Below are positions 3,001 through 42,571 of a DNA stretch of 64,000 nt, piece after piece. Position 1 is the stretch's first letter. Every line of letters starts with the position of its first letter. The DNA is taken from positions 15,500,001 to 15,564,000 of the forward strand of contig CM060731.1 of NCBI GenBank assembly GCA_030704615.1. Direction: 5' to 3'. The stretch comes from Takakia lepidozioides. Lineage: Eukaryota > Plantae > Bryophyta. Position numbers and translations under genes: made by a program. Under the pieces are notes generated by a model. It had not been told where the DNA came from. It saw only the letters and a program-made list of their open reading frames with translations, and ran no database searches.

Positions 3001-6000
3001 ACTCCAGATCAACCTCGAGACGAGTACTTATAACTCTGCAGAATGTCTTGCCAACAGCATTGAGGAGCGTGATGCCACGGTAGTTCCCCGGTTCTTCTCT
3101 GTCACCCTTCTTGTATAGACTGACAATGACCCCCTGTCGCCAGCGAAAGGGGATCATTTCAGTCTTCCAGATAAGGTTAAATAGGAGAACTAGGGCCTCT
3201 ATCATGGGATCGCCACCGTGCTTGATAAGCTGGTTGACTATACCATCAGGTCCACCAGCTTTATATCCGTTTAAATGTTGAATTGCTTCCACAATCTCAG
3301 AAGAACTAATGGGAGCGTTATAAGCCATTGAAATATACTCCAGTTCATCAGGGCTGTTTTGAATCATAGGAACAGTTTTTCCAGCTGTGTCCCTCCATTC
3401 AGCAGAAGACCCCTCACTGTTAGACCTAGAAGTTCTGCCAAGGATACTGTAGTGAGTTTCAAAGGTTTTGACAATGTCAACCGATGAAGGCACCACTGCA
3501 CCTTTACCAGTCTTCAGCGCTTGTACTTGCTGACCGTTTTTCAGCTTGTACAAACGTTGAAGGCAACCAGAATTTCTTGTCATTACCACCATGGTGGTTT
3601 GAGTTTATTTCACTGTATAACTTGTCCCAGTATAATTTCCTCTGAGACCTAACAAGCTGATTGATATCTTTAGGGAGCTGGTAGTACCTCGCCCACAATT
3701 CTCTGTTGGTTTTCAAATTGCAGCACTCTTTACAGAGGGCTCGTCTCTCAGCTATCTTGAGTTTGATCTCATTGGTCCACCAATTAACAGCTCTGCCGCA
3801 GACAATTAGTTTCCTCCCAATGATCTTGTCAGCCAGAGGAAACGAAACTCTCCCAAGAGTCCACTGCTCTTTCGACTTCATTTCTTGCGTTGTCAGAGCT
3901 AGACTGAAGTTCTTGGAGCGATTGGACAAAATGAGGGAGAGCCTCTTGCAAGGCCTGGACATACTCAGCCTTGACCTCCTCATTATGGAATTTTTCTATG
4001 CGCCACTTCCGAATCGAACGTTTCACAGATCTCTTGGTGTTGGGAAAACACCTTTTGATCTGAGTCCAAACCAGGAAGTGGTCAGAGGTACCAATATCAG
4101 TTCTGTCGATCAACACATTGGCACACTTGGGAAACAAATTTTTGTCCATTATGATATAGTCCACAATGGAACGTTCCCCAGTTGGGATTTCCCACGAGTC
4201 CACTGCACTTGGTCACCTCTTGTCCTGTTATTCAAGGTCAAAAGCTGAAGCTCTTCCAGACAGTTAATTAACCATCTGCCATTAGAATTCAGCTCGTCCT
4301 CACCAAAAGGCCCAATGATATCGTCCTGACGGAGACCTTTGCCCACCCGGGCATTGAAGTCACCCAATAGAACCACCTGACCTTTGGCAAGGAACGAAGC
4401 ACAGTCCAGCTTTACATGTTCGAAGGCTTTGTCTGCGTCAACACTAAGGGTCCCCTCTGTGGGCATGTATACACAACCCACAAAGAGGTCCTTCGTATTC
4501 ACGCCCTTCAGATTCAGTTTTAGCCAGATACTATGCTCATACCTCAAACCCTTGTTGATAATTTCACAAATATCAAACAAGAAATCGCGGACAAAGAATC
4601 CAACCCCAATTTGGCCGCGTTTGGCAGAGGCTGCCTTGAGAGTACACATCTTACCCGTCCACTTATACCCATTGACATCTCTAACCAATTTATCCGGTGT
4701 TTCCCATGTCTCCTGACCAGCACAAATATGAATGTTATTGGCCTGAAGAACTTGTGCCACTTCGAGTTGTTTCCTTTGGTTAGTCAGCCCTGAGAAATTG
4801 AAAGTGCCCAGCCGCAAGCCAGCCCTTTGCATATGAATTGTTTGTCGTCTAGGTAGCTTGTGATTGTTCCTGGATGGCCAACCGTTCTGCAAAGGGGGTA
4901 CAGTTACCGCGTGTGTAGATTTTGCTCGTCTTGTGTAGACCTTGAGAATTGGTAAACCATTCAGGGTACCAAATCCATCAGTTACACGACGTATAGGCTC
5001 TGCACACTTAGGGACAGATTGTCCGTCTGACTGCTTGGGGACAATTACCCCATGTATAGATTTTGCTCGTCTTGTGTAGACTTTGAGGATTGGTAAACCA
5101 TTCAGAGTACCAAATCCTTCAGTTACACGACGTTCAGGCTCTGCACACTTAGGGACAGATTGTCCATCTGACGGCTTGGGGACAATTACCCCGTGTATAG
5201 AATTTGCTCGTCTTGTGTAAACCTTGAGGATTGGTAAACCATTCAGAGTACCATATCCTTCAGATACAGGACGTTCAGGTTCCGTACACTTAGGGGCAGC
5301 TTGTCCGTCTGTGTTTGGATTCAACCTCATCCAGAGCATCAAACCGATTAGAAACTCTCAAGTTGAAGTCCCTGCCCTTGGTTGTCTTCCTAGAGCGCCC
5401 CATTGAATCACCAATGTCTAAGACCGCTCTCCAGCCAGTCAAGGGACGAACTTCTTTAAGATTTAATTGATGTGGGACTCCATTAGAAGCACTTTTGGGC
5501 ATTGCAACCTTCAACGTACCCCTATTATCAAGTCTTCAGATGGAACCATTAGCGTTGAAATCCAAGCCTAAGCCAGAGCATGTAGTTTTAAAGGACACAT
5601 CGTCCATCCTGGGATTCACCCCAAAAACTACACATGAAGCCCTAGATTTGGCATAAGTAACCAATTCCCAGGAATCACCCTGAGTAGTGTTGATGTTGAT
5701 AGGAGATAGGATTTTCATTGTTTTCGCAGGCCATAAGTTTAAGCACAGGAACCAACCCGAGCCCAAGTGCCGAGTATGCTAGACAGAGCATACGACTGCC
5801 CAATTTGGGCGGAGGGGCTGCCCCCAAGCGGTAGGGGTCCGCTTGTTACCATTCAGAGATCACACTCCAGGGAGTTGCAGGGAATGGCCCGTGTAGGCAT
5901 ATTCTAAAGAGGGAAAGGCCCCAAGCTTTCCAACTAAATCCAATGCACTACCTTACCTGGAGCAAAGCGCTTCAGGTCGAAACAAAGACACGAGGTCACA

Positions 6001-24709: not shown

Positions 24710-27700
24710 TTACCAGTAATCTCCACAAGAACAAACCCCATCTTGAAAGTGGTGAAAACGGTTGGCATCCCGTACAACGACTACTCGCCCAACAATCTTA
24801 GAGATGAACTTGGTGGCAGTGTGGCAGTCACCACACACCCGAAGGTTTTTGATGATGCGGATAGGTGTCTGAGGGGGAGTGCTGATCAGCCCAAAAGCAA
24901 TGGCCAGCTTCTCACTGTGGTGGCAAAGAGAAAATTCCTTTTGCTCCTCCTCCACGTCATGCAATACAAAGCGATTGTCAGGCACATACCCAATCTCCTT
25001 CATCTTCCCAAACAACCTTTTTAGCTCAGCCTGGATTTTCTCAATCTGTGGATGTGATTTGTCTTCTACAACAAATCTATGCACCTGGTCATTCACCTGA
25101 ATGGAACTGAGCCCTGGCTCCTTTCTGACAGCTCTGTCCTGCATCATTTTTCTCACCTTCACAGTATCATCCCATCTGCCAGCAGCAGCATAGATGTTCG
25201 ATAGCAGGACGTAAGTTGCAGCGTGCTCTGGATCCGACTTGAGAAGGCATTTTGCTGCACGTTCTGCTACCTCCACATTGCCATGTATTCTGCACGCACC
25301 AAGCAAGGCCCCCCACACTCCAGCATCTGCCTCAATTGGCATTTGGTTAACAAAGGCCTCTGCCTCATCCAATTGTCCTGCACGACCAAGAAGGTCCACG
25401 ATGCAGCCAAAATGTTCCACTGTAGGAATGAGCCCATGATCTTGACTCATGGAATCAAAGTAGTAACAGCCTTCCTCCACCAAGCCCACATGACTACATG
25501 CAGAAAGAACACACATAAAGGTGATAAGATTTGGCTTTAAGCGTTGCTGTTGCATTTGTTCAAATAGTCGCAGGGCCTCCTGACCACACCCATGCTGAGC
25601 AAGTCCTGCAATCATAGAGCTCCATGAGACCACATCTTTTTCAGCCATATTGTTGAACAGTTCACAGGCAACTTTTACATCCCCGCATTTGGCATACATG
25701 TTAACAAGTGCATTCTCCAGAATGATGTCAGACGCAATTCCGGCTTTCATGATATCAGCATGCACCTCTCTGCCCTTTTCCAAGGCAGCCAGGCTGGCAC
25801 ATGCATTGAGAACAGAAATGAATGTGACCTTGTTGGGTGTCACCCCTTCTAGTATCATTTGCTCATACATCTCAAAAGCCTCCCTACCACACCCATGCTG
25901 AGCATATCCTGCAATCATCGTGCTCCATGAGACCACATCTTTTTCAGCCATGTCGCTGAACACTTCATGTGCATCCTTCATGCTACTGCATTTCGCATAC
26001 ATGTTGACAAGGGAATTCTCCAATTGAATATATGGCGCAATTCTAGCTTTAATGATGTCGGCATGGACCTGTTTCCCTTTTTCCAGGTCTGCCAGGCTGG
26101 CACATGCATTGATAATGCAAATGAATGTAACATTGCTGGGCCTCACCCCTTCCCGTACCATTTGTCCATGAAACTCGAAAGCCTCCATATGATACCCATA
26201 CTCAGCATATCCTGCGATCATCACGTTCCATGAGACTACATCTCGTTCAGCCATGTTCTCAAACACTTGACGAGCATCTTTCATGTTCCCACATTTGGCA
26301 TACATGTCAATAAGGGCAGTCTCCAGAATGATATCTGGCAAAATTCCAGCTTTGATTATGTCAGCGTGTAGCTCTTCACCCTTCTCAAGAGCACCCAGGC
26401 TGGCAAATGCATAGAGAATGCAAATGAAGGTGACGATGCTGGGTTTCACCCCTTCCAGTTTCATTTGCTCGTATATCTCTAAAGCCTCCCTACCACACCC
26501 ATTCTGAGCATATACGGTGATCATCGCATTCCATGAGACCACATCTCGTTGAGCCATATTGTCAAATACTTGATGTGCATCCTGCATGTTCCCACATTTG
26601 GCATACATGTCAACAAGGGCAGTCTCCAAAATAGAATCCAGGGGAATTCCAGCTTTGATGATGTTAGCATGGACCTCTTTGCCCTTTTCCAGAGTTCCCA
26701 GGCTGGCACATGCGTTGAGAATTCCAATGAAAGTAACTTTGTCTGGCAACACCCCCTCCTGTATCATTTGCTCATACATCTTGACAGCCTGAATACCGCA
26801 CCCATGTCTAGCACATCCTGCAATCATCGTGCTCCATGAGACCACATCTTGTTCAGCCATATTGTCAAATACCTTCTGTGCATCTTTCATATTCCCACAC
26901 TTGACATACATGTCCACAAGCGCAGTCTCCAGAATGATATCTGCCACAATTCCAGCTTTAATAATAGCAGCATGCACCTCTTTGCCTTTATCCAGAGCCA
27001 CCAGGCTGGCACATGCATTAAGAATACAAATAAATGTGACTTTGTTGGCTCTCACCCCTTCCTGTGACATCTTCTCATACATCTCAAACGCTTCCATACC
27101 ATGACCATGTTGGGCATATCCTGCGATGATCGCATTCCATGAGACCACATCTCGTTGCGCCATATTGTCAAACAGTTGACGTGCATCCTTCATGTTCCCA
27201 CATTTGGAATACATGTCAACAAGCGCAGTCTCCAGAATTACATCTGGAACAATTCCAGCTCTGATGATGTTTGAATGGACCTCTTTGCCCTTTTCCAGGA
27301 CTGCCAAGCTGGCACACGCATTGACCACAGAAATTAATGTTACCTTGTTAGGCCTCACCCCTTCCTGTACCATTTGCTCATACATGTTCAAAGACTCCAT
27401 ACCACACCCATGCTGAGCCCATCCTGCAATCATTACATTCCATGTGACCACATCTCGTTGAGCCATATTGTCAAAAATTTGATGGGCATCATTCATGCTC
27501 CCACACTTGGCATACATGTCTGCAAGGGCAGTGTCCAGAATGAGACCTGGTACAATTCCAGCTTTGATGATGTCAGCATGGACCTCCTTGCCTTTCTCAA
27601 GGGCTCCTAGGCTGGCACACGCTTTGACAACACAAAGAAAAGTGACATTGTCAGGCATCACCCTTTCTTCTATCATTTGCTCATAGATCTCCAAAGCCTC

Positions 27701-28565
27701 CCTACCACACCCATGCTTCGCATATCCTGTAATCATTATAGTCCACGTAAACAAATCTCGTTTATGCATTTTGTCAAACACTAGGCGTGCATCCACCAGG
27801 CTACCACACTTGGCATACATATTGACAAGGGTTTTGAGTAAAAAGATGTTTGTCTTGAATCCAGTTTGGATAATGTTGGCATGCACCTGCTTTCCCATTT
27901 CAAGGTCTTCAATTTTGATACACTCCCGCAAGAGGCAGACATAAGTTTCAGAGTCTGCTGAAATGCCTTGTTTATTCAAAATGTGCAGGGCCTCTTTCAA
28001 TTGACCTGTCTGACATACTGTCCTCAAATCCCCGCAACTGCCAGACAAGCTGATGTTGACTGCATGACCAGATTGTGGCTGACCCTGTACCATGGCAGCT
28101 ACTGCTGCTTTCACCCAGGGAGGGGTCGACCTACCCTCAATCCAAAGGACTTCATTTATGCGCTTATGTCTGAAGTCTGGTGAATTTGGATTTTTCTGTG
28201 AAAACCACCAGTTTCGACCTGAGCAGCTATAGCTGTTACCACAGCCTGAAATCGACTCTGGTATAACCAGCAGTGCTCCGAGCATCTTTTATGTAACACG
28301 CAACAACCATGAACAAACGATTCATAGCATAGTACGGACTGCGTTAATCGTTTGTTGCTAACAAAGTCCAAAACTGTCCATAATTAAAGGGACTGGACCT
28401 ACAATCCAGTAAACAAAACACCATCATGCCAGCTTCAGTCACAAACCTCCTTGAGAGACAATTTTGACGTTCTAGCTAGCCTCACCTTATCAACCCTGTT
28501 GTCCCACCATTGTGAAGGATCTGAGAAGAACTCCTGCCAGAGTCGTTCCTTTCTCTTTGCTTGAT
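24710..28565 (-). CDS. PLS-class PPR-DYW protein (organellar C-to-U editing factor) with an N-terminal OSB-type PDF motif; exons 28565-28486 and 28195-24710; true start unresolved
   Basis: (L-S-P)x7-L-S-P2-L2-S2 (26 motifs, 303-bp period), then E1, E2, PG box, HSEKLA, CGDCH and terminal DYW. GT-AG intron at 28485-28196 joins in phase 0. Confidence 0.93.
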
Positions 28566-29520
28566 CTGTGGGGATGAAATACAAGACCATGAGAACTTCC
28601 CTCAGTGGTCACTGGCGGTTGACGCTTGCCCTGCTCCAAGGGTCCACAGCAATAACATCTGTGGTAATACCTCTCTGCATTAATTTCGAATTATTGCTCC
28701 TCTCGAAGCTTGCAACGGGATTTCAAGGCCAGGCGCGACGAGTCCTTACAGAACTCTCGCCCTTCTGGGTAGACCTCCAAAACGGGGTATGCCACAAGCA
28801 TTATGGTTCAAACAAGCAATGCACATAACTACCAATCTCACTCACAAACGATGAGTAGAAAATGAAAAAGTCTACGGCAAAGAGAGCTGTGGACTGTTTT
28901 CTTGACCGAGATAGGCTGCAATTTCTGCTGGGATGGGTCAAGCACGATGTGGAGCCTGGATCGCTCCCATTTGAAACACAAAGTAGTGCGTCGAAATTTC
29001 CCTGTCCATACCTTTCTTCTGCATCCCTGGATGTTGGAGATGCGGCACAGCCCTCACTTGCAGGTGAGCGCGGCCCGACATTGCCCAGCTGGGTACCCAT
29101 TTCAGCTCCACAGAATGGCCCGCACACCTTTTCCATGATGTGAGGCTTTCGGGCCCCTCACGGAAAGGACACGACAGGGCCTTGGGTCCCTCTCTCTGCG
29201 AGCTCAGCACATTGGCGGAGCGCACTGTCATTCCTGTCTGTGAAAGAGAAGAGAAGAGAAAGAATAGAGAAGACAAGAAGAGAGTAGCGCCACTTACATC
29301 AGTTGTAACCGATTTCACTTTAGAGAATCTGTTATGAAACTGAAACATAGCGATTCTTCAGCCTAAGGTAAGGTGTGGTATTAGGCGATTATATATATAT
29401 ATATATTTAGAACAGGGGTTTATATTCTATTTTCAAAAAACTTTACAGTGGCCCCTAATACCTAGGTCAATATCCCGCAAAGGCTAGTACCTATTGACAA
29501 GCCAATACTTGTGCAATACC

Positions 29521-30140
29521 GAGAGAGAGAGAAGACTCCGGCCGAAACCGGCGTACCTCACGGCTACTGCCCCTCTCGGGGGTGGGCCCTATAAAAAAAC
29601 AGGTGTCCATGGACCCGAGGTAACCGGGGGAGAGTGGTACTTAGGGTAGCGGTACCAGGGTATCCTAGGGTACCTTGGGGTACCGAAGAAGGATTGGCTT
29701 CGAGCTGCCGTTTATTGGTAATAATAGCTGTTAGGGAGGTGAGGCGCGGTGAGGTGAATAGCTTTAAAGCATTTGTGGATCGGGGGATAGGGATTTTAAG
29801 AGTATTGTGTAACACGTTTATACTGGCGTTGTGGATGCCGCCTTTAGTTCCAGCTGTGATGACTGATAAGGGACCTGTGTGCCAACCACGCTGGCGGAGA
29901 GCGAGAATGAGAGAGACATATTTTTGTCGTTTCTCTAAGATGGAGGAGGCTGGGTATCGGTCATGACAGTCTGTGAATTCAATGAAGTGAATGGTGAGTG
30001 CTTGGGAGGGGGCAGTGGGTAGAGGGGCATTGATTGGTAAGCCCTGAAAGAGAGAGATGACTCGGGCCGGCCAGGTTGAGAAGGTGATGTCATCTTCATG
30101 TCAAATTTGTCACAGAGGGCTTGTAAAGAGCTTTTCAAAT
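29521..30140 (-). mobile_element. 3' fragment of a restriction-like-endonuclease (RLE) non-LTR retrotransposon, possibly Dualen/RandI-like
   Basis: Translates to IHFIEFTDCHDRYP....EKRQKY..LI..LRQRGW..GPLSVITAGTKGGIH (E..K..KY core of RLE domains), followed by a GC-rich hairpin 3' UTR and (CT)n tail. Confidence 0.65.
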
Positions 30141-30254
30141 AAGCAAAGAACGTTGTCCCCTGTTATTAGAATAGTTTTAGATTTTTTGCTTTTGTAGCCT
30201 AGTCTGTTCAAGTCTGTTATTACATGATGGCTGCTCAGCTATCTACTTGTTGGT

Positions 30255-32665
30255 TCCACAACAAAATCTGAGATTAGTGTACCTCAGTCACCAGTGCACA
30301 AAGGAAAACCTTTGCATAAAAAAATGGTCGAACCCTCCTTGGGTGAAAGCGGAGCTGGCGACCTTTATACTTTGTCAAACATATTCTGCTTATGATTCTA
30401 CTGTTGATGTACACCTTGGCGCTCAACATCAACTGTCTGAACGAGACATTCATACATGGACGAAGATGATGGCAGGTTGTGTCAAGCATGGACATGTTGA
30501 GGAGGCTCTCAAAATCTATGAGCAATTGCGACACGAAGGCGTGACACCAAACAGGGTCACATTCACTTGCGTCTTCAATGGTTGTGCCAGTGTAGGAGCC
30601 CTAGAAAGGGGCAAAGAGGGTTTATGCTGATATCCTTAAAGCTGAAATTGCATTTGATATCATTTTGGAGAATACCCTTATTGACATGTATGCCAAATGT
30701 AGGAGCATGAACGATGCACATCAAGTATTTGATAATACGGCTGAATGGAATGTGGTGTCATGGAGTGTAATCAGTGCTGAATGTGCCTAGCATGGTCATG
30801 GTATTGAGGCCCTGCATCTCTTTGAACGCATGCAACAGTAGGGCATGCAGCCAAACAGTATCACTTTTATATATCTTCTCTCTGTGTGTATTCATGTGGG
30901 CCTAGTGGATGAGGGCCTTCACTACGGTTGTCTGTCTCTTGCTTAAGTGCATCAAGATGAAAGGTCTGGAAACTGGAAAACAGGTGCACACTCATATTAT
31001 CCAAAGTGGGTTCACGCCAAGGATGCGAAGGGAGTTTTCAACACTATGGTTGAACAAGATATTGTGTCGTGGCACGCAATGCACAGCAGGGACGTGGGAT
31101 GGTGGCTTTGGAGACCTATGATCAAATGATGGAAGTTTACAATAACCGAACATCGGAGAGTTCTAATGCAGGAGGGATCTGTGGCAATAAGAGCCTCCAG
31201 GAAGAAAGAGTAAAGCCCAACCACATCACATTTGTGCGCATTTGCAAGCCTGGCAGCCCTGGAAAAAGGCAAAGAGGTGCATGGTTGCATCGCGAAAGTT
31301 GGAATTGTACCAGATGTCATTCTGAACAATACCCTCGTGGACAGGCATGCCAAATGGAGGAGGCATTTCAGCAGATTCAGATACGTTTGTCTGTCTCTTG
31401 CTTAAGTACATCAAGATGAAAGGTCTGGAAGCTGGAAAGCAGGTGCACACTCACATTATCCAAAGTGGATTCACGCCAAGTGTTTTTCTCCTCAACACCC
31501 TTGTCAACATGTCAAACCTGTGAGCTTTGGAAAAGGGGAAAGAGGTCCATGGTGACATCGTCAAATGCTGGAATTGTACCAGATGTCATTCCGAACACTG
31601 CCCTAGTGGACATGTATGCCAAATGTGGGTGCATTAAGGATGCGAAGGGAGTTTTCAACATTATGGCTGAACGAGATGTGGTATCATGGAAGACGATGCT
31701 TGCAGGGTATGCATAACAAGGACGTGGTATGAAGGCTTTGGAGACCTATGATCAAATGATGGGGGAAGGGGTGAAGCCCGACCACATCACATTTGTGTGC
31801 ATTTGCGATGCGTGTGAAAGCCTGGCAGCTCTGGAAAAGGGGAACGAGGTCCATGGTGACATCGTCAAAGCTGGATTTGTACCATATGTCATCCTGAACA
31901 CTGCCCTGATGGACATGTATGCCAAATGTGGGTGCATTAAGGATGCAGAGGGAGTGTTCAACAATATGGCTGAACGAGATTTGTTGTCATGGAATGCCAT
32001 GCTGGCAGGATATGCACAGCAGGGTGTGGGATGGAGGACTTGGAGACCTATGAGCAAATGATGGGGGAAGGGGTGAAGCGCGACCACATCATGTTTGTGT
32101 GCGTGTGCAAGCCTGGCAGCCCTAGAAAAGGGCAAAGAGGTACATGGTTGTATCGACAAAGCTGGAATTGTACCAGATGTGATTCTGGACAATATCCTCG
32201 TGGACACGTATGCCAAATGTGGGAGCATTGAGGATGCGGAGGAAGTATTCAACAATATGGCTGAACGAGATTTGGTGTTATGGAATGCCATGCTGGCAGG
32301 ATATGCACAGCAGGGGCGTGGGATGGAGGACTTGGAGACCTATGAGCAAATGATGGGGGAATCGGTGAAGCGCGACCACATCACATTTGTGTGCGTGTGC
32401 AAACCTGACAGCCCTGGAAAAGGGCAAAGAGGTGCATGGTTGCATCGGCAAAGCTGGAATTGTACCAGATGTGATTCTGGACAATACCCTCGTGGACATG
32501 TATGTTTAATGTAGGAGCATTGAGGATGCGGAGGAAGTGTTCAACAATATGGCTGAACAAGATTTGGTGTTATGGAACGCCATGCTGGCAGGATATGCAC
32601 AGTAGGGGCGTGGGATGGAGGACTGGGAGACATATGAGCAAATGATGGCGGAAGAGGTGAAGCGC
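30255..32665 (+). pseudogene. PLS-PPR pseudogene mosaic, paralogous to the PPR-DYW gene, with a decayed PDF motif
   Basis: KENLCIKKWSNPPWVKAEL then P/L/S motifs with stops and frameshifts; the first-L motif GISADSDTFVCLL..GKQVH occurs twice (~30930 partial, ~31360); no E/DYW. Confidence 0.9.
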
Positions 32666-41011: not shown

Positions 41012-42571
41012 CTACACTCTAAGCTTCTGTGATTCCCTCTTAAGGGCATTGGCTCTGATTAAACTACCAATGGTGTTGAACGCCAGTTTGATATCATCCA
41101 GTGGGTTGCCAGGCACCACAACCTTGTATAAATAGCTGTCAAAAGTCATCTTCTGAACATAGTCATCAGCGCACATCTCAACAAATGCCTCCCGAGCAGG
41201 GTTGGATCTGTAAAAGACCTTCTGAAGGATGTCGAGTACCTTGTAGGTGGCCCAGTACTTTTTATCCCACTTGTCGAGATACACTCTCAAGTCCGCCTCA
41301 TTCACCATCCTGGTTCCATTAGCCGAGCCCTCAACAATGGCCTCTGCACACATGCGCCCAGACTTTGCTGCGAAGTAAATGCCCTCCCCTGAGCATTTGG
41401 TAACATACCCAGCGGCATCCCCAACCAAGGCTACTCGGTTGCTGGCCCGACGAGGCCTGGGGTGCTCAGGGATGGGATGAGCCTCCACTCTGATGATCTT
41501 TCCACCGGCAATCTTATCTTTGGCCCGATTGCGAGTGGCAGTCTGATATTTCTTAATTGCAGGCTTGTTGATCACAGTGCCGGTTCCCACAGCAACGTGG
41601 TCGCACTTGGGGAAAACCCAGCCATAGAAGTCGGGGGAAACATCATCTCCAACATACATCTCGGCCAAATTCTCGTAGTACTCCATCTTATCTTCGGGAA
41701 TTTTGATTCTCTCTTGGAATGCAATGGCATAGTTATACTCTCCAGCATCAATGTCTTTGGCCACTCTGCTGTTAGCACCATCTGCTCCAATGATGGCGTC
41801 AACTTCCAGAACGGAGGGGGTTCCCACCTTAGATGTCCCATCGAACTTAGTGTAGTGCAAAATGTAGGGGCTATCATCATCCTTCGGAATCTCCATCCTC
41901 AAGAACAACCCGTTAATAACCTCGGCCCCGCTTTCAGCAGCCCGCTCCCGAAGAAAAGAATCGAGCACCTCCCGTCTCACCATCCCAATGTACTCATCGT
42001 CATTCAATGTTCTCCCCACGTCCACGGCCACATTCGAGGGCGAAATCATTTTCATCTTGGTAACCTTGCGGTCAATGATTTCCGGAGGAAGATCAAACTC
42101 GCCAACCATGCATAGAGGTATAGCTCCACCACAAGGCTTGGCATTGTCGAGCTTCCTCTCTATCAGGAATGTCTCAATCCCACCCTTGGCAAGAGTTTCC
42201 GCGGCACAACCCCCAGCGGGACCTCCACCCACAACAGCCACTCGAAGCTTGCGCCCCTCCAGTTTCGTGCTCGACTTCCCCGCATAGACCGTCAGCGTCG
42301 TCCGCCTCCCCCGTGCTGCTCCCTCACCGTGGTCCACACTCTGGAGACCCTTAATCCCCCAGGCAGAGCCCGCAGAGAGGGGAGAGGCACGCAATCCATC
42401 GAACGCCCTGAGAGCCTGCCTCGAAGACGATCCCCGGACATGTCTGCTCGCGCCATCCGCCTTCAGAGCAAGTTGGGCTGCATCCGAAAATCTGCAAGCT
42501 TGTTCGGAGGACTGAGAGGAGAGAGACGAAAGGGTCGAGCCCACAACTGCGGCGTGCGGAGATGCCGCCAT
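41012..42571 (-). CDS. CHLP: Geranylgeranyl diphosphate reductase, chloroplastic; single coding exon
   Basis: Ser/Ala/Arg-rich transit peptide, then LRVAVVGGGPAG, KPCGGAIPLC, GDDVSPDFYGWVFPK and GDAAGYVTKCSGEGIYFA. Confidence 0.98.
   Translation of the reverse strand: MAASPHAAVVGSTLSSLSSQSSEQACRFSDAAQLALKADGASRHVRGSSSRQALRAFDGLRASPLSAGSAWGIKGLQSVDHGEGAARGRRTTLTVYAGKSSTKLEGRKLRVAVVGGGPAGGCAAETLAKGGIETFLIERKLDNAKPCGGAIPLCMVGEFDLPPEIIDRKVTKMKMISPSNVAVDVGRTLNDDEYIGMVRREVLDSFLRERAAESGAEVINGLFLRMEIPKDDDSPYILHYTKFDGTSKVGTPSVLEVDAIIGADGANSRVAKDIDAGEYNYAIAFQERIKIPEDKMEYYENLAEMYVGDDVSPDFYGWVFPKCDHVAVGTGTVINKPAIKKYQTATRNRAKDKIAGGKIIRVEAHPIPEHPRPRRASNRVALVGDAAGYVTKCSGEGIYFAAKSGRMCAEAIVEGSANGTRMVNEADLRVYLDKWDKKYWATYKVLDILQKVFYRSNPAREAFVEMCADDYVQKMTFDSYLYKVVVPGNPLDDIKLAFNTIGSLIRANALKRESQKLRV

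Follow-up and report, generated by a model that had tools for sequence, protein, structure and literature searches.

The window analysed here is a stretch of 64,000 nucleotides (nt) from Takakia lepidozioides (Bryophyta), assembly GCA_030704615.1, contig CM060731.1, positions 15,500,001 to 15,564,000; positions below are counted from its first letter. On its minus strand, at 24710-28590, lies an intact, transcribed and correctly spliced gene in which a PDF motif, known from the plant OSB proteins that bind single-stranded DNA of organelles, precedes a PLS-class PPR array, E motifs and a DYW domain. We think it probable that the gene is nuclear and expressed and encodes a C-to-U organelle RNA-editing factor of PLS-E1-E2-DYW architecture (PG type), with, in addition, one N-terminal PDF motif encoded by two exons. 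The parts of the gene are given in order of transcription, with the evidence for each in brackets; the OSB-only profile is described below.

28566-29348, minus strand: 5′ region with in-frame candidate starts (phase-compatible donor scan and direct reading).
28486-28565, minus strand: exon of 80 nt encoding ..LWQEFFSDPSQWWDNRVDK, the N-terminal half of the PDF motif (sequence, OSB-only profile, Diphasiastrum counterpart exon).
28196-28485, minus strand: phase-0 GT-AG intron of 290 nt, placed inside the PDF motif after DNRxxK (contig joint, coverage gap).
28091-28195, minus strand: opening of the large exon, where KNPNSPDFRHK..LWIEGRSTPPWVKAAVAAM completes the PDF motif as its second half (OSB-only profile, alignment).
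28058-28090, minus strand: putative short linker, rich in Gly, Ser and Gln, from the PDF motif to the first PPR motif (translation, composition).
25325-28057, minus strand: PLS-class PPR array of 27 motifs (Pfam, 101-residue register, 303-nt repeats).
25121-25324, minus strand: E1 and E2 motifs (Pfam E_motif; boundaries by reading the translation).
24713-25120, minus strand: DYW cytidine deaminase domain, PG type, ending ..CSCGDYW (Pfam, residues read directly).
24710-24712, minus strand: stop codon (sequence).

Architecture of the coding region

The large open reading frame spans 24710-28285 on the minus strand, and direct translation gives ..CSCGDYW as its C-terminal end. The gene has 1161 codons without interruption, and every catalytic residue of the DYW domain is present. 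Pfam assigns PPR_2 (1.5e-139), PPR (5.1e-125), E_motif (6.1e-20) and, across the full profile, DYW_deaminase (1.1e-43) to the window protein; Eplus scores 7e-5 and 22.9 bits, slightly below its 24-bit cut-off. The translation shows a PG box, HSE (HxE), CGDCH (CxxC) and a terminal GDYW in the DYW domain, which belongs to the ordinary PG type. The E1/E2 motifs and intact DYW domain that an earlier, model-made reading of the sequence (the first-pass annotation) had placed downstream of the PDF motif are therefore there. So is its PLS array, although not with the 26 motifs it counted: the 101-residue register of the translation gives 27, as eight P1-L1-S1 triplets of 101 residues followed by P2-L2-S2, nine PLS triplets in all.

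The triplets are also visible in the DNA, where eight tandem repeats of 303 nt at 25496-27918 (minus strand), one PLS triplet each, are 61-79% identical. The array has been expanded by recent internal duplication of triplets, and its specificity residues have diverged afterwards. In the P motifs the fifth residue is T, N or S and the last residue D, N or S; the S motifs read T/D five times and then N/D twice. Such differences among tandem triplets have the look expected of a working array that diversified after duplication.

The split PDF motif and its relatives

Read directly on the minus strand (a slash marks the splice site in letter strings), an acceptor ..ccccacag/AT lies at 28566/28565, the 80-nt exon runs from 28565 to 28486 and ends ..GAT AAG/gtgagg, and a second acceptor, ..ttttcacag/AAAAAT, marks where the large exon resumes at 28195. 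The hidden exon, its phase-0 GT-AG intron of 290 nt and every coordinate that the first-pass annotation gave for them agree with this reading, and the translations of the two exon pieces, ..KERLWQEFFSDPSQWWDNRVDK and KNPNSPDFRHKRINEVLWIEGRSTPPWVK.., match the peptide it had read across the junction. The exon enters in phase 1, its first two bases finishing a split codon, and leaves in phase 0; translation must therefore begin in a coding exon further upstream or at a start that reads through into this one. Each half of the motif was translated, aligned and searched separately, with the two exons kept apart. Aligned with five motifs of Diphasiastrum complanatum, the two pieces abut at DK/KNP with neither gap nor overlap.

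Two public runs of one organism, from two studies, were placed as contigs on 27650-29600; the RNA type is a guess in the record. The joint between 28486 and 28195 had been named beforehand as the test of the proposed intron, and it is present exactly. A contig of 348 nt from one run (X1) lies on 27887-28195 and continues for 39 nt past the joint from 28195 to 28486, with 1 mismatch overall. The stretch that it skips is exactly 290 nt, with CT..AC on the plus strand and hence GT..AG on the strand of the gene. Depth is 0 in both runs in the intron bins covering 28244-28375 and 4.7 in X1 in the bin 28376-28441, and the flanking exons are covered. With exons covered and intron bins at depth 0, the pattern is that of RNA and not of genomic DNA. 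Many more contigs, at 90-95% identity and from both runs, have joints within a few bases of the same site, and the depth summed over the 80-nt exon (the WWDNR exon) exceeds that of the locus-specific contig by a factor of several hundred, the excess coming from paralogous contigs. The near-identical joints and the high depth together indicate that many expressed paralogues carry the split motif.

Pfam has no PDF model, and neither half of the motif matched any Pfam family. We therefore turn to profiles. One built from five Diphasiastrum PPR-borne motifs and the two window pieces, with 1.84 billion proteins scored, found 1154 proteins with E <= 1e-3, of which 487 reach E <= 1e-10. The top matches are mostly proteins without PPR motifs, 250-500 residues long, with 1-5 PDF copies in the C-terminal half; 5 of the 10 that were scanned have an N-terminal SSB/OB-fold domain above the Pfam threshold, and one match is named 'Protein OSB3, chloroplastic/mitochondrial'. 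The reverse profile (OSB-only) was made of nine motifs from the five OB-fold proteins only. Run against 2113 six-frame pieces of the window, it gave three matches in all. The first-half exon matched profile positions 3-27 at E 6.6e-10, and the opening part of the large exon matched positions 18-62 at E 4.7e-12; the weakest match was a fragment of the neighbouring pseudogene (E 9.4e-6). In the alignment the window motif keeps all nearly invariant PDF columns, and the gene shows the signature of about 50 residues, W..FF..P..WWDNR..K.NP..PDFKHK....LW.....P.WV. Because the profile searches agree in both directions, homology to the OSB PDF motif, which the first-pass annotation had recognised from the letters, is established by sequence comparison. 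SSB (PF00436) was absent among the Pfam matches listed for the window protein, and gave no match on its two short N-terminal pieces. By its domain content the gene thus shares the PDF module and is not an OSB family member, since the OB-fold domain is absent.

Judging from database proteins, the PDF-PPR combination is common in seedless land plants and forms a large gene family. A word-based search with one Diphasiastrum PDF region returned at least 75 clusters of PDF-PPR proteins in Diphasiastrum complanatum; these carry 1-3 PDF copies, two being most frequent, and in 25 of 74 the sequence ends in YW. The best 150 profile matches include one Sphagnum cluster of 39 members and a PDF-PPR protein with two copies from the fern Adiantum capillus-veneris. 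The proteins of all three genera are annotated as 'hypothetical' or 'uncharacterized'. The guess that similar N-termini might sit unannotated in moss or fern proteomes has thus come true in Sphagnum and Adiantum, and in Diphasiastrum as well. The fusion is no singular event. Among Diphasiastrum paralogues median conservation is 77% in the PDF motif versus 71% in the adjacent PPR sequence, with no clear signal of extra constraint.

PDF motifs also occur in other contexts, in proteins of Coptis chinensis (P0055) and Kingdonia uniflora (P0008). One of the pair has 1526 residues, with three PDF copies ahead of a kinesin motor domain; the other has 1160 residues, with 13 PDF copies and a weak SSB match. 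They may be annotation fusions or real architectures.

The intron position is shared. In a Diphasiastrum gene (P0003) each of two PDF motifs is on two exons, and the first-half exon is 80 nt long, entered in phase 1 and left in phase 0 after the K, as in the window. A phase-0 intron after DNRxxK is also found in a Sphagnum PPR gene (P0171), and at the same point in a gene of the liverwort Riccia fluitans (P0097) that has OSB architecture, an SSB domain and one PDF motif; there the residues flanking the intron are near-identical to those of the window. As the intron position within the motif is common to OSB-type and PPR genes, the simplest reading, which these genes suggest, is that the PDF motif moved between them as a two-exon module. 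A tree of 139 PDF motifs requires 7 changes of the PPR label, where shuffled labels require 13.6; its supported branches demand at least 2. By this tree PPR-borne copies cluster, but one clade is not demonstrated and the motif is too short to give the number of origins.

The 5′ end and the neighbouring sequence

Four in-frame starts are candidates.

28590, minus strand: ATG, in frame with no splice (acceptor unused).
28680, minus strand: ATG with donor at 28671 (ATGCAGAGAG/GT at 28680-28671); phase-compatible, weak donor, leader of 3 residues, in-frame stop 15 codons upstream.
29136, minus strand: ATG with donor at 29058 (CAA/GTGAGG); phase-compatible, leader of 26 residues.
29348, minus strand: ATG with donor at 29012 (AAG/GTATGG); phase-compatible, leader of 112 residues with a hydrophobic start.

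The first two had been offered as alternatives in the first-pass annotation; both exist in the sequence, and the upstream exon ending near 28671 is compatible in phase. A locus-specific contig of X1 is colinear with 28680-29024. The exon with the ATG at 29136 is mildly favoured by paralogous contigs, which connect 29075-29167 with the WWDNR exon.

At 29036-29167 and 29498-29600, contigs of both runs align at 90-95% identity, with summed depths in X1 of about 21 and 71. In some of them 29075-29096 is linked with the WWDNR exon or with 28180, and the ends of these joints are non-canonical. The two segments may represent an upstream exon conserved in the paralogue family; they may also be a repeat.

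Other readings of the upstream region were rejected or came out empty. A decayed second-half PDF exon at 29160-29057, with a donor at 29057, was considered and dropped: the real donor is CAA/GT at 29058, the long open reading frame is in the wrong frame for it, and a blastn comparison with the PDF exons of the gene showed no similarity. A weak blastx match between 29223-29086 and a PPR P-L junction is not significant (E 2.5), and a search for an upstream exon by short protein fragments returned one uninformative match of 46 residues.

Elsewhere in the window, a decayed PPR gene lies at 30247-32514 on the plus strand, head-to-head with the PDF-PPR-DYW gene. It starts with the degenerate second-half PDF motif found by the OSB-only profile (E 9.4e-6). 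The PPR motifs that follow are broken across several frames, and the gene showed no DYW end. An uninterrupted open reading frame of 519 residues at 41012-42571 (minus strand) matches Pfam FAD-binding (2.2e-10) and a geranylgeranyl-reductase-like family (4.1e-6). Another, at 4149-5342 (minus strand), has an endonuclease/exonuclease/phosphatase domain (1.3e-7), as in LINE-type retrotransposons.

Role of the PDF motif and meaning for the family

By analogy with standard editing factors, the PPR array would read about 27 nt of RNA and the DYW domain would deaminate a C just 3′ of them. PPR tracts bind RNA in parallel orientation, so the N-terminal PDF motif, on a short flexible linker, would be positioned towards the 5′ side of the bound RNA. 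There it would most likely be a sequence-independent accessory for single-strand binding, which could raise the affinity for the transcript or the residence time on it; alternatively, with an OSB-like preference for single-stranded DNA, it could hold the factor at the nucleoid. RNA binding, binding of nucleoid DNA and protein contacts are all compatible with the sequence.

An AlphaFold2 model of the motif, with the 139 motif sequences as alignment, is predicted to be compact, with a predicted local distance difference test (pLDDT) score of 93.6 and a helix, two to three short strands and a helix. Searched by shape in the ESM Atlas, it resembles one SSB-family cluster and three PPR/DYW clusters of streptophytes, at template modelling (TM) scores of 0.85-0.87. 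The same search also matched hypothetical proteins of phages (Uroviricota), in two clusters and about 190 residues long, at TM scores of 0.65-0.69 over 58-59 residues. The phage match is possibly a distant fold relative, or may be chance given a model of 64 residues, and is to be taken as a lead only.

Several observations weigh against a working organelle editing factor whose PDF motif assists in binding RNA. The RNA label of run X1 is only guessed, and the exact junction comes from one contig at depth 9. OSB1 and OSB2 are reported to prefer single-stranded DNA over double-stranded DNA or RNA (PMC4166229), and a role in RNA affinity is therefore not the default. The PDF model has no PDB relative by sequence, Foldseek or VIA-align (best Z 3.4), so the fold offers no mechanistic hint. 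None of the four candidate starts is followed by a clear organellar presequence, as the first-pass annotation had remarked for the gene, and the best-placed leaders are short. What chiefly puts this copy in doubt is the risk that it has no targeting peptide and might fail to reach an organelle. Finally, a decayed head-to-head paralogue lies next door at 30247-32514.

That paralogue and the want of a convincing transit peptide (the leaders have 3-26 residues, or belong to an open reading frame with a hydrophobic, signal-like start) are what one would see if the gene were a retired duplicate, transcribed and with its body intact, that has lost its first exon with the transit peptide, its product being neither imported nor editing. 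The shallow locus-specific contigs (depth 4-9) agree with this too. Set against them are the uninterrupted 1161 codons, the complete set of DYW catalytic residues and the correctly spliced intron, as well as specificity residues that vary between tandem triplets in the manner of a working array. Moreover, the longer isoforms of the Sphagnum and Diphasiastrum homologues have presequence-like N-termini, which makes a missed upstream exon plausible here. We regard retirement of this copy as doubtful, if a real concern.

A nucleoid tether, the idea put forward in the first-pass annotation, in which the PDF motif would anchor the editing factor on single-stranded DNA of the nucleoid or of transcription bubbles and so allow co-transcriptional editing, draws on the published behaviour of the OSB proteins. 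The PDF motif of OSB1 is reported to be sufficient for single-stranded DNA binding (PMC6963530), in line with the substrate preference of OSB1 and OSB2 given above (PMC4166229), and the PPR-borne motif keeps all nearly invariant PDF residues. But here the motif is carried on an RNA-binding scaffold and would already be brought near RNA, and no feature of the sequence separates a preference for DNA from one for RNA. On balance we hold a tether to be speculative and unlikely. The wider proposal that PDF-PPR-DYW proteins act at organellar single-stranded DNA (the non-template strand or R-loops), that editing in seedless plants is co-transcriptional and, in its extreme version, that some of these proteins deaminate DNA, seems to us speculative and quite unlikely.

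The motif could instead be a protein-interaction module, for oligomerisation or for recruiting partners in editosome assembly, with no binding of nucleic acid. OSB2 is reportedly tetrameric; against this reading, the activity published for the motif is single-stranded DNA binding (PMC6963530). Many family members carry 2-3 PDF copies, and the predicted fold is small, compact and rich in aromatic residues, with no nucleic-acid-binding PDB match; even so, we consider a pure interaction module improbable. It is hardly credible that the PDF motif brings the DYW deaminase to single-stranded DNA of the organelle for it to mutate. The case consists of the juxtaposition of a reported single-stranded DNA-binding motif with a cytidine deaminase, whereas the gene has an ordinary PG-type DYW domain together with a PLS array and E1/E2 motifs typical of RNA-editing factors, and DYW domains are not known to deaminate single-stranded DNA.

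The preferred reading, an RNA-editing factor with an accessory PDF motif, can be set beside three known kinds of protein. With PLS-class PPR-E-DYW factors the gene shares PLS triplets, E1/E2 motifs and a PG-type DYW domain with HxE, CxxC and terminal DYW, and it would be expected to share their mechanism, in which the PPR code reads RNA and the DYW domain deaminates a C; members from Physcomitrium edit in E. coli (PMC6397227). In the described factors, however, a transit peptide is followed directly by PPR motifs, whereas here a spliced PDF motif precedes the array, and the array holds eight tandem triplets still 61-79% identical in DNA. With OSB proteins it shares the motif of about 50 residues (conserved W, FF, P, WWDNR, K, PDFKHK, LW and P-WV) and, in the liverwort OSB-type gene, the same phase-0 intron inside it; but OSB proteins have the PDF motif in the C-terminal half together with an SSB/OB-fold domain and belong to DNA maintenance, whereas here the motif is N-terminal, lacks an SSB/OB-fold companion and has an RNA-editing enzyme as its partner. 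The PDF-PPR proteins of Diphasiastrum, Sphagnum and Adiantum have the same architecture (1-3 PDF motifs, PLS-class PPR motifs, often E/DYW) and the same PDF exon structure. Relative to its best Diphasiastrum matches the window protein is about 41-52% identical over the first 120 residues, with about 68% identity in the DNA of the PPR array, and it has a single PDF motif where two copies are commonest in Diphasiastrum.

Our literature search found no paper that pairs the PDF motif with PPR proteins or describes the fusion, and the statement of the first-pass annotation that no functional description was known to it stands for the searchable literature. An OSB evolution paper of 2026 takes an OB fold plus PDF as its criterion, so that PDF-PPR proteins would be excluded there, and a kingdom-wide survey of domain fusions of editing factors mentions neither PDF nor OSB.

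Among programmable RNA-editing enzymes the PPR-DYW proteins are understood best, and they are being engineered into tools. The range of the PDF motif is now extended beyond the OSB proteins, and the conservation of its split-exon structure makes a clear case of exons shuffled between a protein of DNA maintenance and one of RNA editing. A large natural subfamily with an extra putative single-strand-binding module, in mosses, clubmosses and ferns, suggests that affinity, placement or coupling to the nucleoid may be tuned in ways that are as yet unstudied, and the family gives natural material for comparing the same protein with and without its PDF motif.

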